Shown in pieces: positions 34,102 to 64,000 of a stretch of DNA of 64,000 bases. The translations under genes were made by a program, and so were the position numbers. Origin of the DNA: Macrostomum lignano (Eukaryota); the NCBI GenBank assembly GCA_002269645.1, contig NIVC01001206.1, positions 109,850 through 173,849 on the forward strand. Direction: 5' to 3'. How positions within the stretch are numbered: position 1 is the first letter of the stretch; every line of letters starts with the position of its first letter. The notes beneath the pieces are model-generated. The model had not been told where the DNA came from. It saw nothing but the letters and a program-made list of their open reading frames with translations, and made no database searches.

Positions 34102-34552
34102 AGAGCTGCTGGCTTCGCGCCGATTTCTCTGCACAATACCTGCTGATTTCGATTTTTGTTGCAGCTGCTCTATTGCGTAACTAGAACTATGATGTCGAAA
34201 GGGAGTCTGGATATCCTTTGATCGGAGCAAACAAGTGTCAGTTAGATGAACCAGTCTGCTTCCCCTAGCAGATACCCGCGCAGAGTCTCATATATTAAAA
34301 TTGTCGCAATATATTATCATATTTAAGGCCATGCCCAGTTGAGCACAGCTGCAAACAGTCGCACATTGCCTCGCTATTTCCGCCTGCAGTGTCTATAGTT
34401 AAACTGCTTCACTAGTGCAGTGATAGCGCATATAGGATTGCAACGCTTCCCTCTCTTCTCGTTTGAAATTTTCATGTGCACCCCTAACTGCACATTGCAG
34501 CTGACGCCAATCCATCCATGAACTACTTGTGTCTGTTTATTATCCCCTAAAA

Positions 34553-35085
34553 CTGGGGTCGGCTAACCTCAAGAGCCAGATTGAGAACCCAGCTATTGGC
34601 TCGGGCTGAAGAGAGGAGAGAGAAGAGGGGGGGAGAGGGAGGAGAGGAGAGGAGAGGAGAGGAGAGGAGAGGAGAGGAGAGGAGAGGAGAGGAGAGGAGA
34701 GGAGAGAGAGAGAGAGGAGAGGAGAGGAGAGGAGAGGAGAGGAGAGGAGAGGAGGAGAGGAGAGGAGAGGAGAGGAGAGGAGAGGAGAGAAGAGAGAAGA
34801 GAAGGGAGAGGAGAGAAGAGGAGAGGAGAGGAGAGGAGAGGAGAGGAGAGGAGAGGAGAGGAGAGGAGAGGAGAGGAGAGGAGAGGAGAGGAGAGGAGAG
34901 GAGAGGAGAGGAGAGGAGAGGAGAGGAGAGGGGAGGAGAGGGGAGGAGATGTAAAAAGAGAGAGGAGATTAGAGAGAAGCGAGCTGAGAGAAGACACAAA
35001 AACGGCAGGATTGCTATTGTGTGAAGTTTCAAAGGACCCGTGGGCCGGATAGACAGGCTTCGCGGCCGGAGTTTTCTGACGCCTG
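34553..35085 (-). mobile_element. hAT (Charlie-like) MITE with 8-bp TSD, carrying a (GAGGA)n tract
   Basis: Imperfect TIRs ctggggtcggctaac / gttttctgacgcctg; flanks ccctaaaa and ccctaaac (7/8 match); subterminal GGCCCG/CGGGCC motifs. Confidence 0.7.
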
Positions 35086-35844: not shown

Positions 35845-38800
35845 CTAAGAAATTTGCTTATCGTCAGTCCACGGGGCGCCAGCCGAGTACTCGCAGCTCA
35901 TCCGGCCTCCTCCGCCTTCCGATTCGCGAAGAATCTCGGCTTCAACGCGCAGGTGCCGACCGCGCAGCCGCCTGCCGCAGCTTTCCGCCGCCGCCGCCGC
36001 CGTGACCGCCGCTGCCGACTGCAGCTGCTGAAGCCGCTGCGGCTCCACGCCAGGCCGCCAGCCGTCGCGCGGCAGCGGCACGCCCGGCTGGAAGATCCGA
36101 CGGAAAAGGGCGAGCGCGACGTCCTGGTCTCGAGCCAGGAGCTCGGACACCGTGGCGCCGACTACCGCTTCCAGCTTGTCAACGGGCACAACGATGAGCT
36201 CCGTAGCTGAGGCTGCGTACGCGGAGGTCGATCGCAGACCCTGTCGGAGCATCGCCTCGGTGCCAACCAACTCGCCGGGCTCGTGCGTGTCCAGCAGCTG
36301 GCTTGGCCGGTTGGGCCCCGGGGTGGCCGAGCTGGTGACGCGACCGGAGTAGACGATGAAGAGGCTGGTGATCTGGTCCGAGCCCTGGCAGGAGAGGAAA
36401 AAGAGAAGGAAGAGCTCAGAATATGAGCTAAAGGGGGCAAGAATATTGGGTACTGTGGTCACTAATGCAGGTTCCTTGTTCAGTCGCATCAAGACACAGT
36501 GACTCATTTTATCTGATTGAAAAGAGAGAAAAGGAAGCTGTTGGAGTTCATAGCTCGTGCGTGTCTGATAAGGATACGACGAAAGAATGCACAAAAGAAT
36601 GTCTGTTTAACCGTTCGCCCACCTCCAAGAAGATGCTCTGGTTCGGCTGCTTCTCATCGATGCACGACATTATGCTGGCTTGGCTGGCCCTCAGCCTCTG
36701 CAGCTCGCGGTCGGTGAACAGCCGTCCCACTTGCTGATGGCACATCAGGGCTTCAAGGCCGAAGGCGTAGACTCTGCCAGCAGCCGCTGGCAACGACTCG
36801 GCCGATGCTGCGGCGGTTAGCAGCTGCAGGTCGGCCTCCGCTGCGCTGGGGTACCTGGCCGCCAGGTAGGCTCGAAAAGCGTCCGGCCGGCGCAGGAAAA
36901 TGTCGCGAAATTCGCAGCCAATTGCCGTCTCAAGGACGTGCTGATTGACTAAGGCGAGCTCCGTGCCGTCCTGCTTCGCGCGAGCTTCGAAGCAGCACAC
37001 GGCCGGCAGGTAGAGCTGCTCGGGGCACAGCAGACTGCCAGCCGGGCGAGTCTCTGTCCGTTCCTGAAAAATATAGAGAGATTTCCCGAGAGTTCCTGCG
37101 AGTTTCAATTGGGCTTCAATGATATTTCAAACCTGCGAGATGCAGCCGCTTCCACCGCCGCAGCGCGCTGTGTGAGTCACCTCCGCCTCGCCGCTCTGCA
37201 AGAAGTAGATGATCCGCCTGCGCGAGGCCTCCTCTGTGACCATCAGGTCTCCGTCGGAGAATCGGCCGCCGCCACGGCCGCCCAGAATAACCGCCCGATG
37301 GCAAAGCCGCAGTGACCTCAGTTCGCTCGCAGTCAGAACATCATCGCCAAGGGGCTCCAGCATCTGTTGAATCTGGGCAGCCACCAAGCGCATCACCGCC
37401 AAGGCCTTGAAGGTGAGCTCGTCCCGGCCGGCTGGCAGACCGCCGCTTTGCTCGCTGCTCAGGAGCTCGTCCCTAGTCGGCGGAAACACCTCGTCCCGGA
37501 AGGCTCGATCCTCGTCTACCGCTGTCAGCTGGGCAGCGCCAACACACCGACGGAACGTCTCCGTTCTTCGCTTCATCACCGAGATGAAACTGCGGCAGAG
37601 GCCCTCCTCCATGGCATCGACGTCCAGCGCAACCACCGTGCAGGCCGTGTTGGCGTAGGCGGAACGCTGGCAGTGGCAGGCGCTCTGAAGCAGCAGCGAC
37701 TCCAGGCAGGCGCAGCCGCCGCGCCTGACGATTCCCAGCAGGGCGTGCGACCCGTCCGGCCCCACCGGCGCCGTCTCGCGCAGCTCGCCTTCCAGTACAA
37801 CGTACACATACTTCGCGTAGTCGATGCCCTCTGCGTAAAGGCAGTCATTTTTCTGTAGCGTCAAAATATGCGTCGCCATCTGCACCCGGTCGCCGAAGAG
37901 GCCGTCCAGTTCAGTTGGCCGCAGGAGGCCGCTGAGCTGCGGAACTCGGCACAGGCGCAGCACGGAGCGTCGGTGAATGGCTGGCAGGTTCAGCCTGCTC
38001 CGGGCTTGCTCGGCCTCGGCGGCAGCGGCGGCCTCGGCAATCTGCTCGGCATCGGCCGCGGCGGCCGCGGCTGCTGCAGCCTCCTCTTCGTCGCGGGTCA
38101 ATTCAGAGCGGAGCTCTTCGGAGGCGCGCTCCAGCGCTTCGGAATCCTCAATCAGCTGGTTGAAGATCGATCGGGGGCACAGGCCGACTTCAAGGCTGAC
38201 TAGAGTTGAAAGCTCCTCGACTGTAGCGGTGTAGGGCGACGGCAGGCGGAGCAGCGCCTGGCAGCAGACTGTCCGGCCGGCGCCGCGGCGCGCTGAGAAG
38301 CCGCGAGAGTCGGTCAGGCTGACTCCGCCCTGCAGGATGCAGAAGAGCCGGTCGGGCACCGAGCCTTCCTCTTGCAGCACGTAGCCGGCTTCGTAGTCGT
38401 AGGTCTGCAGTTTTTAATTTTTGCATCATCCTACTAGTAGTAGTTTACTACTATCAAGAAAAATGTTGAACTTTTTAAACTCTTATAGATTAATTTACCA
38501 TGCACTTCTTGAATCGTGAAAATTTACTTTGGATGCTTTTGCGGCCTGTAAATGACAACTTTAAAAACTTTCATGGAAAATTTTGAACACACTATTAACA
38601 ATATATTGATACTGAGACTAACAATTCCTATTCGCACCTTTAACGGCTCGTCCCAGCTCTCAGCCAGGGCGTGCAGCTCTCTAGCGGGCAGCGGCCGCAG
38701 GTACTTGATGCTGCGAAGGCACTCGAGAAAGGCGCCCCGGCGGATCTCATTGGCCGCGGCCGTCAAACCGCCGAGGTCCTTCAAGCCGAGGGAGAACAGC

Positions 38801-39390
38801 AGCGAGTCCTCGGCGGCCACGCAGCTGAACTGGGAGGCCTGGCCGATGCACAGCGGGTCAAAGAACAGCTCGGCTCCGCACTCAAGCAGTCCGGTCTGGT
38901 ACTGCAGGCCGCAGGGCGCCGGGTGACTGCGCAACGCCCTGAGCTGGCCTTTGTAGACCAGGTAGCACTGCTTGATGGGGTCCCGTTCGCGAATGAGCCT
39001 CTTGCCAGCTGGCAGGCGTAGCGGGCTGAACGCATCGATGAAGGCGTGGATGAGCTCGCTAGTGTAATACAGGGCCGGCCGGCGGAGCCAGGCGTCCAGC
39101 AGGAACAGCCGCTCCTCCGGCCTCTTGCGCTGCTTCGGCAGCTGCGCCAGCACCCGGTTGGGGTCCTGCACTACCGAGTGCGACAGGCTGACGCTCGTCA
39201 CAACGCTCTGCACTTCCGGTACGCGAGGCCGGTAGCGCGGGCAGCCGCACTCGAGGCGCTGACCGTTGCTGCCGCCGCTGGCGCTGCTGCTGAGACTCTC
39301 TTGCAGCACGCCGTCGTTCGCGTTCGTGTTGGCGTCAGGCGATGGCGGGCTGATCAGGACGAATAGTTCGTTGACTTCGGTTGAGCTCAT
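35845..39390 (-). CDS. Protein of five tandem degenerate cyclic-nucleotide-binding (CAP/CNB) domains, predicted 1001 aa. Exons 39390-38638, 38404-37133, 37063-36623, 36384-35845
   Basis: Five repeats of the CNB pattern (e.g. AGKRLIRERDPIKQCYLVYKGQL; AGYVLQEEGSVPDRLFCILQGGV; KNDCLYAEGIDYAKYVYVVLEGEL; DGDLMVTEEASRRRIIYFLQSGEAEV; FLEGSDQITSLFIVYSGRV..GELVGTEAML..LRSTSAYA). Three phase-0 GT-AG introns give 3006 nt of uninterrupted frame. Confidence 0.85.
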
Positions 39391-39557
39391 GATTATTCTG
39401 ACAATGCGATTGTTGCCTTTTGACGTCTGTTTTACCCCAATTCGCTTTCCTGGCGAAAACTGCATTGAACTCGGTGCGTTCGAGCAAGGCTGAAAATGGA
39501 AATGCCATAGACAATGCGATCTCTGAGCTTCTTGTTGATGGTCTTGTTAAAAATTAT

Positions 39558-40197
39558 CAGGGACTTCTGTGATATAAACTTACCAGAGAATAGAAAAGAC
39601 CGCAGAAGGGCAGCGGAGGATTGAAGGGGCGGAGGGTTGAAGGGGCAGAGGATTGAAAGGGTCGGAGGGTTGAAGGGGCAGAGGATTGAAAGGGTGGAGG
39701 GTTGAAGGGGCAGAGGATTGAAAGGGTGGAGGGTTGAAGGGGCAGAGGATTGAAAGGGTGGAGGGTTGAAGGGGCAGAGGATTGAAGGGGCGGAGGGTTG
39801 AAGGGGCAGAGGATTGAAAGGGTGGAGGGTTGAAGGGGCAGAGGATTGAAAGGGTGGAGGGTTGAAGGGGCGGAGAGTAGAAAACAGAGGATTGAAGGGG
39901 CGGAGAGTAGAAAACGGAGGATTGAAGGGGCGGAAAATAGAAAACGGAGGATTGAAGGGGCGGAGAATAGAAAACGGAGGATTGGAGGGGCGGAGAATAG
40001 AAAACGGAGGATTGGAGGGGCGGAGAATAGAAAACGGAGGATTGGAGGGGCGGAGAATAGAAAACGGAGGATTGGAGGGGCGGAGAGTGGAAAACAGAGG
40101 GTTGAAGGGGCGGAGAATAGAAAACGGAGGATTTTAGGACCTAGGGGTAGGATCCTCTTTTCTATTCTATGGTAAATCTATATCGTAGAAGTCCCTG
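39558..40197. mobile_element. Non-autonomous DNA transposon with 42-bp TIRs, 7-bp TSD and an internal minisatellite
   Basis: TIRs begin cagggacttct and match at 37/42; aaattat directly flanks both ends; interior consists of ~30-bp repeats. Confidence 0.8.
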
Positions 40198-40736
40198 AAA
40201 TTATTGATTTGTTTCAGACTAACAACAAACTTTTGTAATTGGAATGAGTTATGATAAGGTTTTAACTTGATGTTTGATCTGGCAATAATATCGGGAAAAT
40301 TCCAACAATGGAGAATTTCAGATAAACAGCAGATTCTGTGGATGCATCAGACACGAAGGAGGAAAGTGAAGTTGATTGACAGCGCCCATCGCATCCCCGC
40401 TGCGTGGCTTCCCTAGTTCTTGACCAGCTATGGAAACTTCTGGAATCCCCACGAGAATGGCGAGGTTTCAGCTTAGACGCGATGGGGAACAAATCATGCT
40501 GGGAAGGGAGAAATAAAATGAAGGGATTTCCATGTTCGGCCAGTGACTAGCTGTCAATGCCAATTATAGTCAGCCGGCATATCCGGCACAGTTTTTGAGA
40601 TTCTCCAGCTATATTCGCTAAACCTACTTGCAGTAGTTTAAATGGGGATTTTGTCTTTTTTGCATTCGTCTTATATCAGAATTAGGAAGTTTAGAAATTT
40701 TACAAATGGATTTAGTCTATTTAGTGAAATCGTATC

Positions 40737-40813
40737 TTAGGGTTAGGGTTAGGGCTAGGGTTAGGGTTAGGGCTAGGGTTAGGGTTAGGGCTAGGGTTAG
40801 GGTTGGGGTTAGG
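40737..40813 (+). repeat. Interstitial telomere-like repeat (TTAGGG with periodic CTAGGG)
   Basis: About 13 hexamers with an 18-bp TTAGGG-TTAGGG-CTAGGG period. Confidence 0.9.
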
Positions 40814-42159
40814 TGAAGTCTGATTAAAGTCTGGTGAAATGCGTCAACGTTGTTCAACTTAAAAACAAAACTTGTACGAACTTTTCTGTGCCTGCGTCCC
40901 CACCTGGTTCGTGAATTATCAATTTTAGACACGAATTCAAAATTTGCCAGCTCTGGGCCTTGCTTGACTTGTCTCGGTTCAGTTATTTTAAAAACCTGAC
41001 TCAGCTCAACAGAATTATGCAATCAGCCTGTCTGCCACTGACCCTCCTTTGCTGCTCCATGAATTGAGCTGAGAATGGCCCGCGGGGTCAGAGCTTGCGT
41101 CCGCCAGTGCGACTACAAGCTAGATTGGCAGGTGTCAATCAAAGCCTGTCAAATTCACCCCCCCCCCTAGAGCCGGGGCAGAGTGTTGACTTTCGCCAAG
41201 TGGGTCCGCCCCCCCCCCCGAAGGGGCAGACTTCTAGACACTATTCCATTGCTTATCCTATCCTTTTAACTGGCAAGACAGGGCTAGGAGGGCATGGACG
41301 TCTAGGAGCTCGATATCTGGACTGGAGTATCTGCGAGTCTGTGGCGCAAGAGTTTACCGCGGATCGTAAAGGTATCTTAGACGGATACCTATTTAGTAAG
41401 CGTTGGTTTTCCTATCCAGATCTCTAGTCCGAGAAGTCCCTGTCAGTGGATAGCCAACCAACCTCCTTTTCGCCTTTCTTAGGGTCTTGGCGAGAAGGGA
41501 ACCGCAGAGAGAGAGAGAGAAAGAATGACAGAAAGAAAAACACGAGCCTGAAAGCCTGGAGGGGGCCGGGGCCCGACCCTGCCTAGGCAAACAGTTCGCC
41601 ATATAGAGAAATAGTCTGGCCGCAATGCCCACTCGCTAGAATAGATCTAAACACAGGGCTCAGACAGTATACACACAGGCCCAGTCCCAGACTGATTGAT
41701 TGACTGGTGTGCCAGGGGCAGGTCCAAGTTATTCGCTCAATTCATAATTGGCCCAGTGTTGCTGGTTAACCAAGGGGCTCGGCAGACTTTGTCCATGTAC
41801 AGATGGATATCTCTGTGAGAGCTTGTCAATACTGTCTAATGCTCTCGATGAGACCCGGGATTGGGAAGGATTTTCTGCGGCCAGAGCCCCGGGCTATTTT
41901 GAACAAATTGTCATGCTTTTAGCCTGTCGAATTGCGACTGCTAAAATATGGAGATTTTTTCAGTAAACTGCCTACCCAGAGCTCAGAGAGACCGGCTGTG
42001 CCGGCTCCCATATCCCCCAGGAGGCAGTCGACTGGAAATGGGGAATGGGCGAGAGATGGGCGAGTGCTGCTCGAGTGGCTCTGAATACCGCAGCGATGCT
42101 CTGGGATTCCCGCTGGCTTTTATCAATAGAGACGCATTATCGAACAGCCTATGCATGCC

Positions 42160-42847
<688 letters not shown>

Positions 42848-43762
42848 GCAAAAGGCAGCAGTGTATTAGCAGTTATCCGAAGTGTAGAGTGTATAGCAAA
42901 AGCAATGGCCATTTCGAGGCCATATTGGGCAAAGATATTCGCCCAGCAGAGTTCGGTGCGGCTTTATTGAATAGAGTCAAGAGCAATGGCAGCAGCATAT
43001 TATCAAGAGCGAAAAGTTGGAGGGCCATGCGCTTTGCAACACACAGACGTGCTTTGTACACATGTACAGTGGCCCCGAAATATCTAGCAGCACTGCCAGT
43101 ACAATAAAAGCAAGTACAGTTTCAGCTGCAGCGGTTGACTTATAGAGGCTGAACATTTTGCGGCTGTCCCGCTATTTTAGGTACAAAAAAGTCCCACACG
43201 GCATTGCAGTGCCGCTGTTAAGCATGCATTCACAAGTTACTTCAAAATGTTTGCGTTCAGGATAGATAGATATAGAGGCTGTCTTAAACAGTCTGTCATT
43301 CTGTATTTACAGCATACTAACAGTTCTGAATTAGGTAAGTGGATGAGGTAGACAAGCAGTTAACAATGGAACGGGCCCAAAATTGCCCATCAGTAGCCAT
43401 AATGAGATCATGAAGTTCGGGGGGGGGGGCAATTCGAATCACGGATGACGTTTTATGACGAGCTGTAGACAGACAAGTTACAGTGAGCGTAAGCAAATTC
43501 AAGGGCAAAGAATGTTCCCATGGATACGAACCTACAGCTAAACACCTATAGCAACACTCGCTAGGCTTGTGCGCAAGGCAAGAACGGGAGCAGGTCTAGC
43601 AAAGCTTTAACTCGAGGGGAAATCTACCGAAAAAGCGTCGATAATCGGGGTTTGCAAAATCGTATCTAAGGGAAACACCGCGCGCTAAGATGCCGGTAGA
43701 ATTCGAACTGAGGCGATGAGAGAGGCGGGATCTGGGATCTGGGGAGGCTGTGTCGGTGGTCC

Positions 43763-46320
43763 CTACGAGAACACGCGGCGCACGAGGCATCTGTGCAGCT
43801 CGATTTGCTGTTCGCATCGCTGGCAGACCACCTTGATTGGATTGTAGCGCATTGCGCAATTGCACCAGTCGGTCTTGTAGTGATACTCAACCCGGTGATT
43901 CCGGTTGCCGCAGCACAGGTGAGTGCACGACCTGTGATTGCTGCGCGGCACAGTCACGTTGCAGAGCCGCTCGTCAACTCCGTAGTAGCCGGCCAGCTCG
44001 TTGCGCTGGCAGAAGTCCGGCGGCTGGTTGGTGTACACCAGCAGCTTCTTGCGCACCCGTTTTACTCGACGCTGCCGCTCGTCGTGGTAGAAAAGCTGCG
44101 ACGCCATGCGACGCCGGCCGATCCGACGCTTGTCTGTCGAGGATGCTGCTCCGGTGGACGAAGTCGAGACCGACGGCGACAGAAGCTGCTGAATGACAGC
44201 CGGCGGCAGGACGTGCTTGGATTTGACGAATAGCTTCTGCAGGTTGCTCTCGATGCGGCGCGAATGTCGGCGAAGGCCTTTGATGCAAATTCGCTTGGAG
44301 CAGGAGCCGGAGATGCCCAGACAGTTGCAGATGCTGATGCGACTGCGCTTAACCACCTGCAGATTGGTGCGTGTGCTTAGGTGCTCAGGTCCCTTTTCTG
44401 GCGTTTATTAAGCCTTCAAAGTTGTGCACTTTAGTGTGTTTGTTAGCTATAATCTACAATCTATAATCTGCTTGCGGCAACGCAAGCAGTCTTGAAAGTG
44501 CATAGATACATGTACGTACTTTTGGAACGTCAGGGGTGGGAAGTGGGTATCGTACCAAGCTTGCTTTCCCTTAGCCCTATTTCCCTTTCCCTTAGTAATT
44601 GTTCTTCCGTTAGTTTTTGCCCCCCCCCTTGTGCTGGCTGGCTGGTTGAGTAATCTTTGAACGAGCGCAACTCACAATGTGACCCGCCCGTCTGTTGTGA
44701 AAGTTGACTTTCTCGATAAAATTCATGTCCGGCGCGAATCCGCGCGAGTCGCTGAAGAACTGTCGAACCCTCTGGCTGGCCAGCGCGATGTTGTCGTCAC
44801 AGGTGGGCACATTCAGGTTACCGTACTTCTCGCTGATCTTCTCCGGGTTCAGCATCTTCAGCTGCTCTTTGCCCAGCGCGATGCTTCGACGCGGTCGCTC
44901 TCGACGATCGTTCGGTCGGCGGCGTCGATTCTGGCGCCGGTTTTTGCGCCGATTCTTGCGTCGATTCTGGCGCTGTTGGTCTTTGTTTCTTCGGCCGACT
45001 CGCTGACGGGGCGTCTGGTGGCACGGACAGTTGAGGCCGGGGACGCCGCGGCGACAGGCCATGACCAGCTCCTCGATGGCTTTGCTGACCGAGATGGCCC
45101 ATACAAAGGCCGCCTGCGGATATCCTGAGGAGGAGTTGGAATAGCAATTATGCGCTCATTTTTCAAAATTTTAGGCCTATGGTTGCTTGTATTTGCCAAT
45201 GGTTTCCTGTGGTTTTCGATGGTTTCCTGTGGTTTTCAATGGCTTTCTGTGGTTTCCAATGGTTTCTTGTAGTTTTCAATGGCTTTCTGTGGTTTCCAAT
45301 GGTTTCCTGTGGTTTTCAATGGCTTTCTGTGGTTTCCAATGGTTTCCTGTGGTTGCCAATGATTTTCTGTGGTTGCCAATGGTTTCCTGTGGCTTCCAAT
45401 GGTTCCTTGTGGTTGCTAATTGACTATTGTTTACCATTGGCTTATGGTTCACACCAGCTCACCCGAGTTAAGAAACGGCGCAGCAAAAGTGCAATTCCAG
45501 CGCTCGTTGCGAAACATCGATTGACAGATTTTGTAGCCATTGGACAGGCCGATGTGCACAAACTGGTCTGATAGGCTGGCCTCGCGACAGTAGGCCGCCT
45601 GGCGACTGCCCGGCACCGACAGCTCGCCGCCGCTGCCGCCGCCGACAACACTGATACCACTTCCAACATCGCCGACATCGCCACTGACCCTGCCGACACC
45701 ACCGACACCGCCGACACCACCGACACCGCCAACACCGCCGACACCGCCGACACCGCCGCCAACACCGCCAACACCGCCGACACCGCCGACACCGCCGACA
45801 ATGCCGCACATGGCCTCCCGACTTGTCGTGAGAAAGTGGAGAAAAGTTTGCGCATTGAATCGGTCGCTGTCGGAGTCGCTACCGACGCCGTCGCTGCCGC
45901 TGCTTGCCGGGTCTCGCCTGCCGGAGCTTTTGTAGCTGAATATGCTTCTGCGAATTCCGGAGTTTGGGAAGATTTTGTCTGATTCTTAAGTAAGTTTAAG
46001 CTCTGTTCTACCCAATACCGTTAATCCCTATACTCAGATCTACTTCCAAAGCACTATAAAATTTACCCTACATTGTAAATATATATGTATTATGCCATTA
46101 TCCCTACATTCTCAAACTCTTCCCAAATTCTATTTTAACTCTCCCTAAATTCTACTCACCCATCCGCATACGGACAAGCCGCCACGATCCAGCAGAGCAC
46201 CGCAACGCCAATCACGAAGTTGATTCGGCGGATTCGCCAGACATTCGAGTCTGTTGATCTCGTCGCCGATGCAGCCTCCGATCCGTCTGTATCGGCCGAG
46301 TCAGACTCCTGCGACTTCAT
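43763..46320 (-). CDS. wnt: Divergent Wnt-family ligand, left-arm copy, predicted 562 aa. Exons 46320-46160, 45947-45463, 45124-44676, 44356-43763
   Basis: CQSMFRNERWNC, AAFVWAIS..AC..G..C.C, CDDNI, NFHNRRAG, CNCLGISGSC, LLVY..PPDFC, LCCG and terminal Cys; consistent GT-AG phases. The exon 2 acceptor could alternatively lie 12 nt downstream. Subfamily not assignable by eye. Confidence 0.93.
45185..45420. repeat. 20-bp intronic minisatellite (tggtttcctgtggttttcaa)
   Basis: About 12 copies in Wnt intron 2; mirrored at ~58145-58380. Confidence 0.9.
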
Positions 46321-46545
46321 CGCGGTTGTCCCTGTCTAGAGATTGCTAATTGGAATCTTCTGAATCGAAGAGATCTCACCCAGACCAGAGAGAAGTGACG
46401 GCTTGACTGGGCCAGTGGTTTATCTGTGGAAGACATTGAAAGCCGGTACTGAAGTGGACAGGGGGGGGCGAACTCTCAGCCAATCAGAGCTTTCCTATGC
46501 GGTAATTGGCCCGGCATTGACCACACTGTTCTTATCTATCTGAAT

Positions 46546-46837
46546 CAGGGGTTGGCACACTCCGGCCCGCGGGCCACATGCTCTCTAGCCGGCCCTCGGA
46601 TCCTTTGAAACTTCCCATAGCAATCCGGCCCGCTCAAGGTTTGCGTCTCTTCTCTCTTCTCAGCTCTCTTCTCAGCTCTCTTCTCAGCTCTCTTCTCAGC
46701 TCTCTTCTCAGCTCTCTTCTCAGCTCTCTTCTCAGCTCTCTTCTCAGCTCTCTTCTCAGCTCTCTTCTCAGCTCTCTTCTCATTCGCTAGGTTCTTTACC
46801 TGCTCCAAAAATTAAAGAATAAACTTGCCGATCCCTG
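46546..46837 (+). mobile_element. hAT-like MITE with an internal 12-bp repeat (ctcttctcagct)
   Basis: Termini caggggttggca / tgccgatccctg; subterminal ccggcccgcgggcc; homologous to 33008 and 35020-35085; no TSD seen. Confidence 0.55.
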
Positions 46838-48180
46838 AGCCAAACGCACAAGAGCCTAGATCGCATCAAACGGCTGTCTCACTACTGTTAAATTGAATTC
46901 TCATAGCCATTTAGTGTCACTCATTGACCGCTATTATTGAGGAGTGGATTAATTAGCAAGCAGTACAACAGTGATTAACCTAACTAGCAAATCAATTAAC
47001 CAAAAAATCAAATTTTCTGACCTGTCAATCAAAATTAAGTCGAATCCATAGCGACCCCTATTTAGCTGGGGGATGAAAATCATTACCAGCAACAATAGCC
47101 GGGCTGCAATTAGCTCTTTTCCAGGAAAGTCAAAGACAATTAGTCCAGAATGGTCGGTCGCTACACTTTTCTTCGCGATAAACAGCAGCCTTGAGAGCCG
47201 TTGTCTGACCTGTCAAGAAAGTTTTTGGCAAATCTCCGGTTCTAATGACCCGGCGGTGCTGCTCCCCTGTCTGCTGCATTTTGTTGCGCACTTTAGAGAA
47301 AAATGGCAAAAGAAGACAGCAGCAGAAAACAGCCGACTGGACACCGAAAGAGGAATTGTTTCCTATGAAATTCCACACTCAACTCTGTAAGGGTCCTAAT
47401 CAGGCGAGAGTTTCGGGTATACAAAATTTTTCTCTGGCCCCAAGAGAAGCACTTTGGCCTCGCCTGTTGGTGGCTGCATTGGTGCACTAGAAACTCGAAT
47501 CTCTGGCCCCTCCATCGCCTTCTGTTTAGGATTAGGAGGACCATGGATTCCTTGGCCCACTGTGTGTGAGGTGGGGGGGGGTGCTGATGGGGTAAACGGA
47601 AAACAGCGCATCCGCAAAAATCTTGGCTTGGCCAACACGACCCCAGTCCCAACCCACCGACCCGCTCTCTGATAACCTCCTGTCAATCAGCATCACCTGT
47701 CAAAGCTGCGCTTCTGGGCACGGGAGGGTTGCATGTCGAGGACTAGTATAAGGGCTATGTTTGGGAGAATTTTCCCCCGCTATCGTGTCAGTGGCAGCGG
47801 GTGCAGAGTGAGAGATGCTTTCAGTCTTGGCTCCCTGTTCCCGGCAGTGCAGCGTGCTTGTGATTGATGGATTGGCCTAAGCATCTCCTGCTGATGGGTT
47901 GCATCACTCAGCTGAATAGGGGAGCGGCCTCAGCATCTCAGGGAGCCCCCGGTTCCACTGCAGCGATTCTCCACTTAACTCACTGGCTTGGCTGCTTCAT
48001 GGCCCACCACTTTACTAAACTGACCTGGTGACAAGGACACTTTCAACTAGAATATGGAGTGGAAACTCTTTGCCAAATAGCTGATGTTCAGTTATTAAAT
48101 GTATCTGTCTATGACAGTGCAGGTCTTTAAACATTTGCACCTCAAAGACTAGACGGACAATTCACCGTATGGCTGCGGGC

Positions 48181-48415
48181 CGGAGGAGGGGAGAGAGGAG
48201 AGGGAATAAAGAAGAGAGAAGAGAGATTGGAGATAGAAGATACGAGGGAATAAAGGAGAAGAGAGGAGACGAAAGGAAAGGAAAGATGAAAAGGGAGTGG
48301 AGAGAGGAGAGGAGGGAGATGCGAGAGAAGAGAGGAGAGAAGGGAGAGGAGAAGGGAGAGAATAGAGAGGAGAGAGGAGAGAAGAGAGAGGAGAGGAGAG
48401 AAATGAGAAATAGAT
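48181..48415. repeat. AG-rich low-complexity tract
   Basis: Polypurine run sharing gagggaataaa with the tract at ~21890. Confidence 0.8.
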
Positions 48416-48909
48416 GATTTTTTTGCGTTCTCAACTTAATATTGCTTAAGTGGGGGCCGAAGTCTGACTTGTGGGGGAGGAGTTTCTATTCCAGTTGCTG
48501 ATTCAAGGAGTCCTTGACCGGGGCTGGCATCTCGCAGGCCGTTAAATCTCCCGCACGTCAGATTGGAGGCGGCAGGCTGGGCGCAGCTTGATGGATGAGA
48601 TTGAAGTTCTCGGGCGCCCCGAAGCGCGCAAAATCGTGAATCTGGAGAGGGACTTGAAAGATAGAGTGAGAGAGGGGATTATCCTGTCATAAACTCCTCA
48701 TCCCATCAATCAGGATTTCTATCTCGTCTACACTTGCGCCATTTCAATTTACGAGTCGATGTTAATTCAAAGTCCTGAGCTCGAATCCAAGGGAGAAAGA
48801 AGTTTTGGAAGCATCGCTCATCATTTTCGAAGGGGATAATACGCTCCTCTATCAGACATTTTGGAGAAAATGGGGTTGGGGAAAAAGTTTTTGGGGAAAA
48901 AATTTAGTG

Positions 48910-49297
48910 GTTGTAGAACTCAGGGGTGTAGAACTCAGGGGTGTAGAACTCAGGGGTGTAGAACTCAGGGGTGTAGAACTCAGGGGTTTAGAACTCAGGG
49001 GTGTAGAACTCAGGGGTGTAGAACTCAGGGGTGTAGAACTCAGGGGTTTAGAACTCAGGGGTTTAGAACTCAGGGGTGTAGAACTCAGGGGTGTAGAACT
49101 CAGGGGTGTAGAACTCAGGGGTGTAGAACTCAGGGTTGTAGAACTCAGGGGTTTAGAACTCAGGGTTGTAGAACTCAGGGGTTTAGAACTCAGGGGTGTA
49201 GAACTCAGGGTTTAGAACTCAGGGTTGTAGAACTCAGGGGTGTAGAACTCAGGGGTTTAGAACTCAGGGGTGTAGAACTCAGGGGTTGTAAAATTCA
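48910..49297. repeat. 15-bp minisatellite (gtagaactcaggggt)
   Basis: About 25 copies; mirrored at ~54275-54648. Confidence 0.95.
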
Positions 49298-49817
49298 GGG
49301 GCTGTAATAGAATTCTTAAATTGTGAAGTCTTATTCAACATTTTAAAAAATTGATTCATTTTATTCGTTTAATTTTCTAAATTCACTACTGACTTCAATT
49401 AGTAAGTAGCACTTAATAGAATGGGGCACAATTAGTTACATTTTGAAAAAATCTGTCGCAAAAATTTACGAATTTGTGAACAGAGTTGCCGGAACACCTC
49501 AAGGTATTAAACAGAATGAGTGCAAACACAAACCCTTAGCTGCCTCAAACACAAAAACTGATTCAACAAGAGTTCGGTTATTTCCTATTTACTTTCTGAG
49601 CGGCTGTCTCCGGCTGACATATAAGACTGGCTGGTCCCGTCAGACCAAATCCGCTTGCAACTCCTTCACTGTCAGAGATACATGTAGAGCGAAATGTTCA
49701 GTCTTTCGAACTGCCGTTTTGTGAAGCTTTTGCTGGCTGTCTTGGTAACAGGCTGGAGCAGTGAAACCGCCTTGGTTCGGGGCGATGAGGTAAGTGCATT
49801 GTTTCCATATGCAAAAT

Positions 49818-50420
49818 AACCTATCCCACACAACCTATCCCACACAACCTATCCCACACAACCTATCCCACACAACCTATCCCACACAACCTATCCCACA
49901 CAACCTATCCCACACAACCTATCCCACACAACCTATCCCACACAACCTATCCCACACAACCTATCCCACACAACCTATCCCACACAACCTATCCCACACA
50001 ACCTATCCCACACAAACTATCCCACACAACCTATCCCACACAACCTATCCCACACAACCTATCCCACACAACCTATCCCACACAACCTATCCCACACAAC
50101 CTATCCCACACAACCTATCCCACACAACCTATCCCACACAACCTATCCCACACAACCTATCCCACACAACCTATCCCACACAACCTATCCCACACAACCT
50201 ATCCCACACAACCTATCCCACACAACCTATCCCACACAACCTATCCCACACAACCTATCCCACACAACCTATCCCACACAACCTATCCCACACAACCTAT
50301 CCCACACAACCTATCCCACACAACCTATCCCACACCCAATATCCCACACCCAATATCCCAAACCCAATATCCCACACCCAATATCCCACACCCAATATCC
50401 CACACCCAATATCCCAAACC
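49818..50420. repeat. 14-bp minisatellite (acctatcccacaca)
   Basis: About 42 copies; mirrored, with many single-base deletions, at ~53140-53745. Confidence 0.96.
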
Positions 50421-50919
50421 CATCGTTTCCAGCATATTTGGGTGGCACAAATAGACGGAGGCAGCCCAGTGGCTCAGTGGGTGGCGGACTCGCTCGGTTT
50501 AATTAACGAAGGAAAGGTGAGTCATTGATAACAAATCTGAGACACCTGACCGATAGAAAAATCTAATCGTTTATCGAGTTCTCCTACCCACTTAAATGCA
50601 ATTATGCAGATCCCCTACCTGAGGAACAAATTTATTTTCCGCTTGTCCGAGTCCGGCAACCAAAGCGTTGGGAGAAATTTCCTGCTGGCTCCGCTGCAGC
50701 TCAGGATTAACCGCAGCCTGCACACGCATCCGGATGTTGCTTGGGTCTCCTACCAGTCTGCTACTAAAAGGACTAAGAGAGACTTGCTGAAGCTGAGCGA
50801 GGTGAGGTCAGCTGATATGAGATGAGGGAAATCCGAAAAGTTCTGAAACCCACACGCAGGACCTTTAAAAATGCAGCAATTTAATCATGTTTTGATAATC
50901 ATAACACCTTTTCGAGATG

Positions 50920-52506: not shown

Positions 52507-55500
52507 ATGGGGTCATTGAAATGGGGTCATAGAAATGTCGTCATTGGAATGGGGTCATTGAAATGGTCATGGAAATGTGGTCATTGGAATGGGGTCATTG
52601 GAATGTAGTCATTAAATGGTGTTATTGGAATGGCGTCATTGAAATGGCATCTCGAAAAGGTGTTATGATTATCAAAACATGATTAAATTGCTGCATTTTT
52701 AAAGGTCCTGCGTGTGGGTTTCAGAACTTTTCGGATTTCCCTCATCTCATATCAGCTGACCTCACCTCGCTCAGCTTCAGCAAGTCTCTCTTAGTCCTTT
52801 TAGTAGCAGACTGGTAGGAGACCCAAGCAACATCCGGATGCGTGTGCAGGCTGCGGTTAATCCTGAGCTGCAGCGGAGCCAGCAGAAATTTCTCCAACGC
52901 TTTGGTTGCCGGACTCGGACAAGCGGAAAATAAATTTGTTCCTCAGGTAGGGGATCTGCATAATTGCATTTAAGTGGGTAGGAGAACTCGATAAACGATT
53001 AGATTTTCTATCGGTCAGGTGTCTCAGATTTGTTATCAATGACTCACCTTTCCTTCGTTAATTAAACGAGCGAGTCCGCCACCCACTGAGCCACTGGGCT
53101 GCCTCCGTCTATTTGTGCCACCCAAATATGCTGGAAACGATGGGGTTTGGGATATTGGGTGTGGGATATTGGGTGTGGATATTGGCGTGTGGGATATTGG
53201 TTTGGGATATTGGGTGTGGGATATTGGGTGTGGATAGGTTGTGTGGGATAGTGTTGTGTGGGATAGGTTGTGTGGGATAGGTTGCTGTGGGATAGGTTGT
53301 GTGGGATAGGTTGTGTGGGATAGGTTGTGTGGGATAGGTTGTGTGGGATAGGTTGTGTGGGATAGGTTGTGTGGGATAGGTTGTGTGGGATAGGTTGTGT
53401 GGGATAGGTTGTGTGTGGATAGGTTGTGTGGGATAGGTTGTGTGGGATAGGTTGTGTGGGATAGGTTTGTGTGGATAGGTTGTGTGGGATAGCGTTGTGT
53501 GGGATAGGTTGTGTGGGATAGGTTGTGTGGGGATAGGTTGTGTGGGATAGGTTGTGTGGATAGGTTGTGTGGATAGGTTGTGTGGATAGGTTGTGTGGGA
53601 TAGGTTGTTGGGATAGTGTTGTGTGGATAGGTTGTGTGGGATAGGTTGTGTGGGATAGGTTGTGTGGGATAGGTTGTGTGGGATAGGTTGTGTGGATAGG
53701 TTGTGTTGGATAGGTTGTGTGGGATAGGTGTGTTGGTGATAGGTTATTTTGCATATGGAAACAATGCACTTACCTCATCGCCCCGAACCAAGCGCGGTTT
53801 CACTGCTCCAGCCTGTTACCAAGACAGCCAGCAAAAGCTTCACAAAACGGCAGTTCGAAAGACTGAACATTTCGCTCTACATGTATCTCTGACAGTGAAG
53901 GAGTTGCAAGCGGATTTGGTCTGACGGGACCAGCCAGTCTTATATGTCAGCCGGAGACAGCCGCTCAGAAAGTAAATAGGAAATAACCGAACTCTTGTTG
54001 AATCAGTTTTTGTGTTTGAGGCAGCTAAGGGTTTGTGTTTGCACTCATTCTGTTTAATACCTTGAGGTGTTCCGGCAACTCTGTTCACAAATTCGTAAAT
54101 TTTTGCGACAGATTTTTTCAAAATGTAACTAATTGTGCCCCATTCTATTAAGTGCTACTTACTAATTGAAGTCAGTAGTGAATTTAGAAAATTAACGAAT
54201 AAAATGAATCAATTTTTTAAAATGTTGAATAAGACTTCACAATTTAAGAATTCTATTACAGCCCTGAATTTTACAACCCCTGAGTTCTACACCCTGAGTT
54301 CTAAACCCCTGAGTTCTACACCCCTGAGTTCTACAACCCTGAGTTCTAAACCCTGAGTTCTACACCCCTGAGTTCTAAACCCCTGAGTTCTACAACCCTG
54401 AGTTCTAAACCCCTGAGTTCTACAACCCTGAGTTCTACACCCCTGAGTTCTACACCCTGAGTTCTACACCCCTGAGTTCTACACCCCTGAGTTCTAAACC
54501 CCTGAGTTCTAAACCCCTGAGTTCTACACCCCTGAGTTCTACACCCCTGAGTTCTACACCCCTGAGTTCTAAACCCCTGAGTTCTACACCCTGAGTTCTA
54601 CACCCCTGAGTTCTACACCCCTGAGTTCTACACCCCTGAGTTCTACAACCACTAAATTTTTTCCCCAAAAACTTTTTCCCCAACCCCATTTTCTCCAAAA
54701 TGTCTGATAGAGGAGCGTATTATCCCCTTCGAAAATGATGAGCGATGCTTCCAAAACTTTCTTTCTCCTTGGATTCGAGCTCAGGACTTTGAATTAACAT
54801 CGACTCGTAAATTGAAATGGCGCAAGTGTAGACGAGATAGAAATCCTGATTGATGGGATGAGGAGTTTATGACAGGATAATCCCCTCTCTCACTCTATCT
54901 TTCAAGTCCCTCTCCAGATTCACGATTTTGCGCGCTTCGGGGCGCCCGAGAACTTCAATCTCATCCATCAAGCTGCGCCCAGCCTGCCGCCTCCAATCTG
55001 ACGTGCGGGAGATTTAACGGCCTGCGAGATGCCAGCCCCGGTCAAGGACTCCTTGAATCAGCAACTGGAATAGAAACTCCTCCCCCACAAGTCAGACTTC
55101 GGCCCCCACTTAAGCAATATTAAGTTGAGAACGCAAAAAAATCATCTATTTCTCATTTCTCTCCTCTCCTCTCTCTTCTCTCCTCTCTCCTCTCTATTCT
55201 CTCCCTTCTCCTCTCCCTTCTCTCCTCTCTTCTCTCGCATCTCCCTCCTCTCCTCTCTCCACTCCCTTTTCATCTTTCCTTTCCTTTCGTCTCCTCTCTT
55301 CTCCTTTATTCCCTCGTATCTTCTATCTCCAATCTCTCTTCTCTCTTCTTTATTCCCTCTCCTCTCTCCCCTCCTCCGGCCCGCAGCCATACGGTGAATT
55401 GTCCGTCTAGTCTTTGAGGTGCAAATGTTTAAAGACCTGCACTGTCATAGACAGATACATTTAATAACTGAACATCAGCTATTTGGCAAAGAGTTTCCAC

Positions 55501-56721
55501 TCCATATTCTAGTTGAAAGTGTCCTTGTCACCAGGTCAGTTTAGTAAAGTGGTGGGCCATGAAGCAGCCAAGCCAGTGAGTTAAGTGGAGAATCGCTGCA
55601 GTGGAACCGGCGGGCTCCCTGAGATGCTGAGGCCGCTCCCCTATTCAGCTGAGTGATGCAACCATCAGCAGGAGATGCTTAGGCCAATCCATCAATCACA
55701 AGCACGCTGCACTGCCGGGAACAGGGAGCCAAGACTGAAAGCATCTCTCACTCTGCACCGCTGCCACTGACACGATAGCGGGGGAAAATTCTCCCAAACA
55801 TAGCCCTTATACTAGTCCTCGACATGCAACCCTCCCGTGCCCAGAAGCGCAGCTTTGACAGGTGATGCTGATTGACAGGAGGTTATCAGAGAGCGGGTCG
55901 GTGGGTTGGGACTGGGGTCGTGTTGGCCAAGCCAAGATTTTTGCGGATGCGCTGTTTTCCGTTTTACCCCATCAGCACCCCCCCCCCACCTCACACACAG
56001 TGGGCCAAGGAATCCATGGTCCTCCTAATCCTAAACAGAAGGCGATGGAGGGGCCAGAGATTCGAGTTTCTAGTGCACCAATGCAGCCACCAACAGGCGA
56101 GGCCAAAGTGCTTCTCTTGGGGCCAGAGAAAAATTTTGTATACCCGAAACTCTCGCCTGATTAGGACCCTTACAGAGTTGAGTGTGGAATTTCATAGGAA
56201 ACAATTCCTCTTTCGGTGTCCAGTCGGCTGTTTTCTGCTGCTGTCTTCTTTTGCCATTTTTCTCTAAAGTGCGCAACAAAATGCAGCAGACAGGGGAGCA
56301 GCACCGCCGGGTCATTAGAACGGAGATTTGCCAAAAACTTTCTTGACAGGTCAGACAACGGCTCTCAAGGCTGCTGTTTATCGCGAAGAAAAGTGTAGCG
56401 ACCGACCATTCTGGACTAATTGTCTTTGACTTTCCTGGAAAAGAGCTAATTGCAGCCCGGCTATTGTTGCTGGTAATGATTTTCATCCCCCAGCTAAATA
56501 GGGGTCGCTATGGATTCGACTTAATTTTGATTGACAGGTCAGAAAATTTGATTTTTTGGTTAATTGATTTGCTAGTTAGGTTAATCACTGTTGTACTGCT
56601 TGCTAATTAATCCACTCCTCAATAATAGCGGTCAATGAGTGACACTAAATGGCTATGAGAATTCAATTTAACAGTAGTGAGACAGCCGTTTGATGCGATC
56701 TAGGCTCTTGTGCGTTTGGCT

Positions 56722-57017
56722 CAGGATCGGCAAGTTTATTCTTTAATTTTTTGGAGCAGGTAAAGAACCTAGCGAATGAGAAGAGAGCTGAGAAGAGAGC
56801 TGAGAAGAGAGCTGAGAAGAGAGCTGAGAAGAGAGCTGAGAAGAGAGCTGAGAAGAGAGCTGAGAAGAGAGCTGAGAAGAGAGCTGAGAGAGAGCTGAGA
56901 AGAGAGCTGAGAAGAGACGCAAACCTTGAGCGGGCCGGATTGCTATGGGAAGTTTCAAAGGATCCGAGGGCCGGCTAGAGAGCATGTGGCCCGCGGGCCG
57001 GAGTGTGCCAACCCCTG
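56722..57017 (-). mobile_element. Mirror copy of the hAT-like MITE at 46546-46837
   Basis: Reverse complement of the left-arm element. Confidence 0.55.
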
Positions 57018-57242
57018 ATTCAGATAGATAAGAACAGTGTGGTCAATGCCGGGCCAATTACCGCATAGGAAAGCTCTGATTGGCTGAGAGTTCGCCCCCC
57101 CCTGTCCACTTCAGTACCGGCTTTCAATGTCTTCCACAGATAAACCACTGGCCCAGTCAAGCCGTCACTTCTCTCTGGTCTGGGTGAGATCTCTTCGATT
57201 CAGAAGATTCCAATTAGCAATCTCTAGACAGGGACAACCGCG

Positions 57243-59801: not shown

Positions 59802-60807
59802 GGACCACCGACACAGCCTCCCCAGATCCCAGATCCCGCCTCTCTCATCGCCTCAGTTCGAATTCTACCGGCATCTTAGCGCGCGGTGTTTCCCTTAGAT
59901 ACGATTTTGCAAACCCCGATTATCGACGCTTTTTCGGTAGATTTCCCCTCGAGTTAAAGCTTTGCTAGACCTGCTCCCGTTCTTGCCTTGCGCACAAGCC
60001 TAGCGAGTGTTGCTATAGGTGTTTAGCTGTAGGTTCGTATCCATGGGAACATTCTTTGCCCTTGAATTTGCTTACGCTCACTGTAACTTGTCTGTCTACA
60101 GCTCGTCATAAAACGTCATCCGTGATTCGAATTGCCCCCCCCCCGAACTTCATGATCTCATTATGGCTACTGATGGGCAATTTTGGGCCCGTTCCATTGT
60201 TAACTGCTTGTCTACCTCATCCACTTACCTAATTCAGAACTGTTAGTATGCTGTAAATACAGAATGACAGACTGTTTAAGACAGCCTCTATATCTATCTA
60301 TCCTGAACGCAAACATTTTGAAGTAACTTGTGAATGCATGCTTAACAGCGGCACTGCAATGCCGTGTGGGACTTTTTTGTACCTAAAATAGCGGGACAGC
60401 CGCAAAATGTTCAGCCTCTATAAGTCAACCGCTGCAGCTGAAACTGTACTTGCTTTTATTGTACTGGCAGTGCTGCTAGATATTTCGGGGCCACTGTACA
60501 TGTGTACAAAGCACGTCTGTGTGTTGCAAAGCGCATGGCCCTCCAACTTTTCGCTCTTGATAATATGCTGCTGCCATTGCTCTTGACTCTATTCAATAAA
60601 GCCGCACCGAACTCTGCTGGGCGAATATCTTTGCCCAATATGGCCTCGAAATGGCCATTGCTTTTGCTATACACTCTACACTTCGGATAACTGCTAATAC
60701 ACTGCTGCCTTTTGCCTATCTACCTACCTACCTACCTACCTACCTACCTACCTACCTACCTACCTACCTACCTACCTACCTACCTACCTACCTACCTACC
60801 TACCTAC

Positions 60808-61000
<193 letters not shown>

Positions 61001-61001
61001 G

Positions 61002-61070
<69 letters not shown>

Positions 61071-61074
61071 CATG

Positions 61075-61212
<138 letters not shown>

Positions 61213-62578: not shown

Positions 62579-62681
62579 CCTAACCCCAACCCTAACCCTA
62601 GCCCTAACCCTAACCCTAGCCCTAACCCTAACCCTAGCCCTAACCCTAACCCTAGCCCTAACCCTAACCCTAGCCCTAACC
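62579..62681 (-). repeat. Mirror interstitial telomere-like repeat (CCCTAA/CCCTAG)
   Basis: Five CCCTAG variants versus three CTAGGG in the left arm. Confidence 0.9.
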
Positions 62682-63224
62682 ATAAGATACGATTTCACTA
62701 AATAGACTAAATCCATTTGTAAAATTTCTAAACTTCCTAATTCTGATATAAGACGAATGCAAAAAAGACAAAATCCCCATTTAAACTACTGCAAGTAGGT
62801 TTAGCGAATATAGCTGGAGAATCTCAAAAACTGTGCCGGATATGCCGGCTGACTATAATTGGCATTGACAGCTAGTCACTGGCCGAACATGGAAATCCCT
62901 TCATTTTATTTCTCCCTTCCCAGCATGATTTGTTCCCCATCGCGTCTAAGCTGAAACCTCGCCATTCTCGTGGGGATTCCAGAAGTTTCCATAGCTGGTC
63001 AAGAACTAGGGAAGCCACGCAGCGGGGATGCGATGGGCGCTGTCAATCAACTTCACTTTCCTCCTTCGTGTCTGATGCATCCACAGAATCTGCTGTTTAT
63101 CTGAAATTCTCCATTGTTGGAATTTTCCCGATATTATTGCCAGATCAAACATCAAGTTAAAACCTTATCATAACTCATTCCAATTACAAAAGTTTGTTGT
63201 TAGTCTGAAACAAATCAATAATTT

Positions 63225-63863: not shown

Positions 63864-64000
63864 ATAATTTTTAACAAGACCATCAACAAGAAGCTCAGAG
63901 ATCGCATTGTCTATGGCATTTCCATTTTCAGCCTTGCTCGAACGCACCGAGTTCAATGCAGTTTTCGCCAGGAAAGCGAATTGGGGTAAAACAGACGTCA

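Follow-up and report, generated by a model that had tools for sequence, protein, structure and literature searches.

Mlig021679 lies on the minus strand of a 64,000-nucleotide (nt) stretch of the Macrostomum lignano genome (contig NIVC01001206.1, positions 109,850 to 173,849; this whole stretch is called the window, and positions below are counted from its first letter). It encodes a flatworm protein of 1001 amino acids (aa) that is predicted to comprise five cyclic-nucleotide-binding (CNB) domains, numbered D1 to D5 from the N-terminus. Four of the domains are recognized by a curated profile and the other, D4, by internal homology. No effector domain accompanies them. We read the protein, with a confidence that stops somewhat short of even, as a stand-alone CNB receptor or adaptor in which D5 is the sole candidate nucleotide site. 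The CNB family is of course well known, the protein has a database entry as a hypothetical protein, and its architecture is already known from protists and from a metagenomic protein labelled CRP/FNR. What is new is the five-CNB stand-alone build in an animal, the lack of any detectable orthologue, and a set of cassettes that are all non-canonical, with a recurrent replacement of Gly by Cys.

An earlier sequence-only reading of the window had placed a 1001-aa frame at 35845-39390, and these coordinates proved exact. Four minus-strand exons separated by GT..AG introns, spliced in silico, give a product of that length, from an ATG at 39390 to a TAG at 35847-35845. The three introns (233, 69 and 238 nt) leave every junction in phase 0. 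They are AT-rich (30-44% GC), and the coding sequence has 66% GC overall and 80% at third codon positions (GC3). The spliced product is 100% identical to a cluster of M. lignano proteins that includes PAA70796.1 (labelled 'hypothetical protein BOX15_Mlig021679g1, partial') and the UniRef entry A0A1I8H799 (labelled 'Cyclic nucleotide-binding domain-containing protein'). Over 25845-49495 the window matches contig NIVC01001206.1 of assembly GCA_002269645.1 without a difference. The locus is a genuine, annotated and uncharacterized M. lignano gene. The description of its product as an undescribed protein holds in the sense that it is uncharacterized, but it was already present in public databases as a hypothetical CNB-domain protein. 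The protein has a mass of ~109 kDa, is acidic (isoelectric point 5.45) and contains 32 Cys residues. The older-assembly model A0A1I8H799 (991 aa) is without four residues, VCCQ, of the D2 cassette (aa 297-300, window ~38252-38263); a 12-nt indel, allelic or paralogous, or else a difference in modelling would account for this.

A Pfam scan of the whole protein returned cNMP_binding (PF00027) alone (E 2e-37, 127.5 bits), over four stretches that correspond to D1, D2, D3 and D5, and no other family at E<=10. When the domains were also scanned as separate pieces there was one extra, chance-level match (Leg1, E 0.22). Measured against the gathering score of this family, 27.5 bits, D1, D3 and D5 pass on their own and D2 falls 0.1 bit below. 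The N-terminal ~90 and C-terminal 89 residues have no Pfam match. D1 and D2 are contiguous, like a CNB-A/B pair, and two of the database hits described below (P0008 and P0009) align over both. D3 and D5 are clear internal paralogues (Smith-Waterman z 15.5), and D4 is a weaker relative of both. The Ala/Glu-rich helical spacer seen between D2 and D3 in the sequence-only reading was recovered at aa 346-388. In a single-sequence AlphaFold2 (AF2) model of the full length (mean predicted local distance difference test, pLDDT, 35.7) the only region above 50 is a helix at 330-382, the sole long helix of the model, at this spacer.

That reading had also spoken of five CNB folds; four are borne out by Pfam, and the case for D4, which has no Pfam hit, is one of internal homology. 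Scored with a custom CNB hidden Markov model (HMM) built from database hits, D4 gives -0.6 bits, with a faint in-register match over beta2-beta4, and its hhalign P of 0.013 is not significant. A profile of D3 and D5, however, scores 11.6 bits against D4, a value reached by 0 of 2000 shuffles of the D4 sequence (shuffle maximum 6.5). The resulting alignment is collinear from beta3 to alphaB/C, pairing IYFLQSGEAEVT with LFIVYSGRVT, AGSLLCPEQLYL with PGELVGTEAML and TELALVNQHVLETAIG with TELIVVPVDKLEAVVG, and when the five domains are aligned together with MAFFT they are collinear as well. The AF2 model of D4, made from the five-row domain alignment, has a pLDDT of 51.4 and a CNB-like order of strands, short cassette helix and C-terminal helices; 48 of its 50 top Foldseek hits are CNB folds, but with E values of at least 0.016 and a template-modelling score of about 0.38. 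This model is weak and, because its input alignment consisted of CNB domains, it is not independent. Single-domain phmmer searches of the PDB with D3 and D4 gave chance hits only, such as leptin and a designed protein.

The register of the phosphate-binding cassettes was taken from phmmer alignments to CAP (4ev0) and PKG II (5bv6) and from the custom CNB HMM. A canonical cassette, G-E-x-A-L...R-[ST/A]-A with both the Glu and the Arg at their proper places, is found in 0 of the 5 domains (Table 1). In the five-domain MAFFT alignment Cys stands at the cassette Gly position in D1-D4. A [C/G]-x-E-x-[LM]-[LY] pattern is common to D3, D4 and D5, from which D1 (CGAE) and D2 (CCQA) depart. D1-D4 are predicted pseudo-sites, with the phosphate-binding Arg lost in register and Cys in place of Gly. 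The earlier statement that these four domains lack the Arg is correct in register, but D3 does possess an Arg-Ser-Ala (CQRSAYA) two residues out of it. D5 retains the Gly, the Arg-Ser and the SAxxA strand (G863...R873-S-T-S-A). It had been singled out as the one domain to keep both Glu and Arg; R873 is indeed in register, but the Glu (E865) arrives one residue late. The Ser that follows this Arg had further been taken as a sign of cGMP preference. HCN and CAP are cAMP-responsive. In Table 1 of PMC2246266, RT or RS appears in the consensus cassette of HCN channels and in those of several bacterial CNB families. A Ser or Thr at this place is not a diagnostic sign of cGMP preference, and this part of the sequence-only reading is weak.

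Table 1. Features of Mlig021679 and its second copy, in window coordinates
Feature	Position	Strand	Residues and content	Remarks
Coding exon 1	38638..39390	-	aa 1-251: disordered N-terminus, D1, start of D2	donor AAG|GTGCGA at 38638/38637; same in M. lignano models
Coding exon 2	37133..38404	-	aa 252-675: remainder of D2, Ala/Glu spacer, D3, linker, first half of D4	acceptor CTGCAG|ACC, donor CAG|GTTTGA, phase 0
Coding exon 3	36623..37063	-	aa 676-822: second half of D4, linker, start of D5	acceptor TTTTCAG|GAA, donor GAG|GTGGGC
Coding exon 4	35845..36384	-	aa 823-1001 and TAG 35847-35845: remainder of D5, C-terminal tail	acceptor CTGCCAG|GGC
Alternative upstream in-frame ATG	39463..39465	-	MQFSPGK...; +25 aa, giving 1026 aa	open reading frame 38524..39465; part of PAA70796.1
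D1, CNB-type	38731..39120	-	aa 91-220	Pfam 27.7 bits, E 2.7e-6; custom HMM 22.8 bits; hhalign 96.6%
D2, CNB-type, intron 1 inside	38123..38730	-	aa 221-345	Pfam 27.4 bits, E 3.4e-6; custom HMM 24.9 bits; hhalign 95.5%
Ala/Glu-rich helical spacer	37994..38122	-	aa 346-388, between D2 and D3	read from sequence; AF2 helix 330-382
D3, CNB-type	37568..37966	-	aa 398-530	Pfam 35.3 bits, E 1.1e-8; paralogous to D5
D4, degenerate CNB-type, intron 2 inside	36854..37372	-	aa 596-745; insertion after beta4	internal homology
D5, best-preserved CNB, intron 3 inside	36115..36760	-	aa 777-912	Pfam 46.0 bits, E 5.1e-12; aligns to CAP and PKG II CNB-B
C-terminal tail, Ala/Arg-rich	35848..36114	-	aa 913-1001	no Pfam family at E<=10
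D1 cassette			CGAELFFDPLCIGQASQFSC; aligned CGAELFF--DPLCIGQASQFSC	Gly-Glu deleted or shifted, no Arg
D2 cassette			VCCQALLRLPSPYTATV	Cys-Cys for Gly-Glu, Tyr for Arg
D3 cassette			GCACLESLLLQSACHCQRSAYA; aligned CACLESLLLQSACHCQRSAYA	Glu +1; Cys at Arg position, Arg two residues later
D4 cassette			LLCPEQLYLPAVCCFEARA	Glu one residue late, no Arg
D5 cassette	36214..36276	-	aa 859-879, GELVGTEAMLRQGLRSTSAYA; aligned VGTEAMLRQGLRSTSAYA	G863 and R873 in register; T864 at Glu position, E865 +1
Second, inverted CNB gene copy, start only	63956..64000	+	runs off window edge	exact 29-nt match to 5' end of the open reading frame

The protein belongs to none of the CNB-containing effector families, and the sequence-only reading was right to find no kinase, channel, exchange-factor, patatin or docking domain. 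A PKA regulatory subunit is not indicated: the N-terminal 92 aa contain neither RIIa nor any other Pfam family at E<=10, and the five CNBs are non-canonical. The Pfam scan gave no Pkinase hit, as PKG would require, and the reading frame ends at 35845. It likewise gave no REM or RasGEF (CDC25) domain of the Epac or PDZ-GEF kind, no patatin domain of NTE/SWS (PNPLA6/7) and no channel or exchanger domain of CNG, HCN, KCNH, tetraKCNG or sNHE. No transmembrane or other hydrophobic segment was found, the highest 19-residue Kyte-Doolittle mean being 1.35. Two motifs of the RRx[STA]-hydrophobic form are present, RRPAL (103) and RRGAF (217), both inside CNB helices; an estimate from the composition of the protein gives about 0.6 by chance. 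RRGAF was considered as a PKA pseudosubstrate and not adopted, the motif count being at chance level and the site lying in an inter-domain helix.

phmmer, run exhaustively against 1.84 billion representative proteins, yielded eight hits at E<=1e-3, the query protein included. The best non-self hit, P0006, is a metagenomic protein of 840 aa with the source label CRP/FNR regulator (E 1.5e-15), matched over 5 stretches at ~15 bits per domain. The others are P0008 and P0009, which are kinase-linked multi-CNB proteins from environmental sequences, an ABC transporter that contains two CNBs, and three short CNB proteins, of which one is labelled Planctomycetota. All the non-self hits are generic matches between CNB domains, and no metazoan protein besides the query itself was returned at this threshold. 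Word-indexed searches of 5.8 billion proteins found only the protein's own cluster with the full length and with low-complexity regions masked, and nothing with the D3+D5 profile. That cluster draws on NCBI and UniRef, which the collection therefore evidently includes, and a recognizable orthologue would probably have been picked up if an annotated animal proteome had one. By these searches of representative and word-indexed protein collections, Mlig021679 appears taxon-restricted, with no detectable orthologue. When a profile of the five domains was compared with the PDB, the first hits were the PKA-R of Toxoplasma (5j3u, 2.1e-8), the PKA-R of Plasmodium (5kbf) and PKG I (3shr). The domains therefore belong to the eukaryotic PKA-R/PKG branch. 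Horizontal transfer from bacteria, raised by the metagenomic best hit, was rejected, given the generic similarity of ~15 bits per domain, the spliceosomal introns, the host-like GC3 and the PKA-R/PKG-like profile.

Comparison with known systems places the protein among stand-alone CNB proteins, a class missing from the established architectures listed in the sequence-only reading, which omitted CBP-O (PMC12422582) and CARP1 (PMC10354285) as well as the metagenomic P0006. In Plasmodium CBP-O, formerly 'Epac-like', CNB1-4 are joined by a CNBX that, like CNB2, is degenerate, and a catalytic domain is missing. At least CNB3 binds cAMP and cGMP, and the proposed role of the protein is to sense nucleotide at the ookinete apex or to sequester it there (PMC12422582). 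Like the flatworm protein, it has five CNBs, a mixture of potentially competent and degenerate, in one chain without a catalytic effector, and one of them has a large beta4-beta5 insertion, as flatworm D4 has an insertion after beta4. Unlike the flatworm protein, with its 1001 aa, no long non-CNB region and no detected orthologues, CBP-O exceeds 3000 aa, has a long N-terminal targeting region and is conserved across Apicomplexa; three of its CNBs keep the canonical Glu, Arg and Thr, whereas no flatworm cassette is canonical (PMC12422582).

CARP1 of T. brucei binds cAMP with a half-maximal effective concentration of about 30 nM (PMC10354285). CNBs are its only reported domains and it is lineage-restricted, as is the flatworm protein, and two of its cassettes are deviant, with Lys or Tyr for Arg (flatworm D2 also has Tyr). 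It differs in having three domains rather than five and a fully canonical CNBD-A, and in being kinetoplastid-specific and flagellar (PMC10354285). CRIS/CNBD2, likewise metazoan, also stands alone and lacks an effector domain; it works via protein partners, and the affinity of its site is described as probably low (PMC3854790). Its one CNBD sets it apart from the flatworm protein, as does its conservation from cnidarians to mammals (PMC3854790), and no similarity between the two was detected beyond the generic fold. Neither the CBP-O nor the CARP1 family is among the phmmer hits, and the likeness to both is architectural only. For CRIS/CNBD2 the same search returned no metazoan hit but the query, no direct comparison with a CRIS sequence having been made. 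Since no sequence relationship was found, the flatworm protein is a member of none of the three.

The PKA-R and PKG tandems (5j3u, 5kbf and 3shr) are the closest solved sequences, and the contiguous D1-D2 resembles their CNB-A/B; the flatworm protein differs from them in lacking a docking domain, a kinase and any canonical cassette, and in having five domains rather than two or four. P0006 also has five tandem CNBs and little else. Its repeats are near-identical to each other and lack the Arg (Tyr in 4 of 5, Val in the other), but compared with the flatworm domains they have preserved the cassette Gly and the general CNB pattern much better, and the 27% identity is generic. Aligned globally to P0006 with MAFFT, the flatworm protein gave a visibly unreliable result, which was left unused. 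Sea-urchin flagellar proteomics (PMC7024835) and T. brucei cAMP-BP1, with two CNBs and five C2 domains (PMC11555346), were judged unsuitable for comparison.

Because no effector is fused to it, the protein would operate in the stand-alone receptor or adaptor mode of CRIS, CARP1 and CBP-O. In the mechanism we propose, D1-D4 would serve as rigid modules for protein-protein interaction or scaffolding, and D5 alone could still hold a cyclic nucleotide, probably weakly, as its Glu is displaced by one residue. Binding at D5 would shift the alphaB/alphaC lid and the C-terminal tail and so alter the partners of the scaffold; instead of switching partners, the protein might sequester or buffer nucleotide locally. 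Stand-alone multi-CNB proteins with degenerate domains that bind cAMP or cGMP provide precedents (PMC12422582, PMC10354285, PMC3854790). The sequence-only reading had proposed one active and four pseudo-binding domains. The four pseudo-sites stand, but the activity of D5 is insecure, given its shifted Glu and missing Gly-Asp.

Several points weigh against a nucleotide-binding D5. In the HMM register it has Ile-Thr in place of the Gly-Asp between beta2 and beta3, the partner of the Arg in PKA RI-alpha, and Thr at the Glu position. The beta2-beta3 Gly is reported to co-evolve with the cassette Arg (PMC2246266). D5 is itself non-canonical, then, and may bind no nucleotide. Conservation of its site is not checkable without orthologues, and the three genomic copies of the gene are about 99.9% identical and therefore carry no information on selection. 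The AF2 predictions, at the pLDDT values given above for the full length and for D4, do not amount to a trustworthy three-dimensional model. Finally, Mlig021679 is not mentioned in the literature searched, in which the papers on Macrostomum and cyclic nucleotides were irrelevant.

A serious, if lesser, possibility is that no nucleotide is bound at all and that all five CNB folds are scaffold or interaction modules independent of cyclic nucleoside monophosphates (cNMPs). Examples of this manner of working are the degenerate CNBs of PDZ-GEF and, in KCNH channels, the CNB-homology domains. The absence of any canonical in-register cassette, the Cys for Gly in D1-D4 and the Thr at the Glu position of D5 would all be expected of such a protein, yet D5 keeps the Gly, the Arg-Ser and the SAxxA strand and has the best Pfam score (46 bits). 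The lack of VCCQ in the D2 cassette of A0A1I8H799 suggests little constraint there. Whole families with non-canonical cassettes are on record (Kannan et al., PMC2246266). On the other side, a divergent CNB of CBP-O with a large insertion still bound cAMP and cGMP (PMC12422582), and CARP1 binds cAMP despite two deviant CNBs (PMC10354285).

The most far-reaching proposal, an animal stand-alone multi-CNB receptor that arose de novo in Macrostomum by internal duplication, to act as a cNMP buffer or adaptor (for example in cilia or sperm) or, through its Cys cassettes, as a non-cNMP, redox or metal sensor, is in our estimation unlikely. Sensing of a different ligand as such, be it a nucleoside, haem, a small molecule or a redox or metal signal received by the Cys-rich cassettes, is improbable too. 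CooA does bind haem through its CNB fold, and the CNB folds of FNR, NtcA and their relatives bind other signals (PMC2246266); a trypanosome PKA-R is reported to bind purine nucleosides (PMC10959531). The 32 Cys residues, which occur at the cassette Gly position of D1-D4 and in CC, CxC and CHC motifs among others, would suit such a role, but this is an argument from composition only: the conservation of the Cys pattern is not checkable without orthologues, and no significant Pfam family other than cNMP_binding is present.

It is highly improbable that Mlig021679 is a diverged orthologue of a metazoan CNB protein (PKA-R, CRIS/CNBD2 or CNBD1) expanded by internal duplication. Its domain profile is closest to the CNBs of PKA-R and PKG, and the D1-D2 junction, EIRRGAFLECLRSIKYL, contains the RRGAF motif and is similar to the basic beginning of the PKA-R A-to-B helix; but RIIa and other Pfam families are missing, the only metazoan hit at E<=1e-3 is the query, and the two RRx[STA]-hydrophobic motifs compare with about 0.6 expected by chance.

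The chances are just as slight that the model is incomplete, with further effector exons, or that the gene is a decaying, non-functional lineage-specific duplicate: the 'partial' flag at the 5' end, the GTAAGT/CAG pair at 39583/39490 and the two truncated copies (575 and 591 aa) are answered by in-frame stops upstream of the first ATG, by surroundings that hold only repeats up to the Wnt gene on one side and a stop followed by AT-rich sequence on the other, by a truncation in copy L002 due to a single-base deletion in a C5 run, a typical long-read error, and by a frame that is intact over four exons with a GC3 of 80%. The flag belongs to the NCBI model, which begins within 39490-39584, and the in-frame stops, read directly from the sequence, lie near 39550, upstream of the alternative ATG. 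The GTAAGT donor at 39583 and the TTTTCAG acceptor at 39492-39490 (minus strand), just upstream of the first ATG, could delimit an intron in the 5' untranslated region, or the CAG could be a trans-splice acceptor.

Were D5 to bind cAMP or cGMP, the stand-alone receptor or adaptor would be a multi-CNB effector of a build otherwise described in apicomplexans and kinetoplastids, here in an animal. It would also offer a natural series of CNB folds at successive stages of site loss, through which the role of pseudo-CNBs could be approached. M. lignano is amenable to RNA interference and transgenesis. If nothing binds, the protein would be one more taxon-restricted pseudo-receptor scaffold, of local interest only.

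The neighbour upstream of the CNB gene, on the same strand, is a Wnt gene, annotated at approximately 43763-46320, whose end lies 4.3 kb away. Its last exon (43763-44356, minus strand) matches Pfam wnt (PF00110) over positions 153-304 with E 5.5e-25, and the contig is therefore genuinely animal; the 562-aa product of this gene has no Pfam hit in the precomputed table. Between the CNB gene and the Wnt gene end at 43763 there are tandem repeats only, and beyond the TAG there is AT-rich sequence. There is thus neither room nor evidence for an extra effector-domain exon. With at least four domains supported and no described protein found to be its orthologue, the sequence-only reading of the architecture stands in this respect as well.

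An inverted duplication of ~10 kb (39421-49495 on the minus strand against 54069-64000 on the plus strand, 97.9-99.5% identity) takes in the sequence upstream of the CNB gene together with the Wnt gene. Owing to this duplication the window also contains, from 63956 on, the beginning of a second CNB gene copy, in head-to-head orientation with the first at a distance of about 24.5 kb. Two more copies in the genome have truncated annotations, of 575 and 591 aa. One of them, L002 (NIVC01002576.1), is 99.9% identical and has a 1-nt deletion in a C5 run of exon 2, at the equivalent of window position 38177, because of which the g2 model is annotated at only 575 aa. This deletion is probably a homopolymer error of long-read assembly rather than the mark of a pseudogene. 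The comparison of truncated copies covers L002; the other copy is L003.

Dense tandem repeats flank the CNB gene at 34547-35032, 39600-40175, 40717-41022, 41983-42912, 48800-49300 and 49794-50528. In translation they are of the SSPLL-, ENRKRRI-, TLTLAL-, SIYL-, VELRG- and NLSHTTYPTQPIPH-types, and they yield long spurious open reading frames on both strands.

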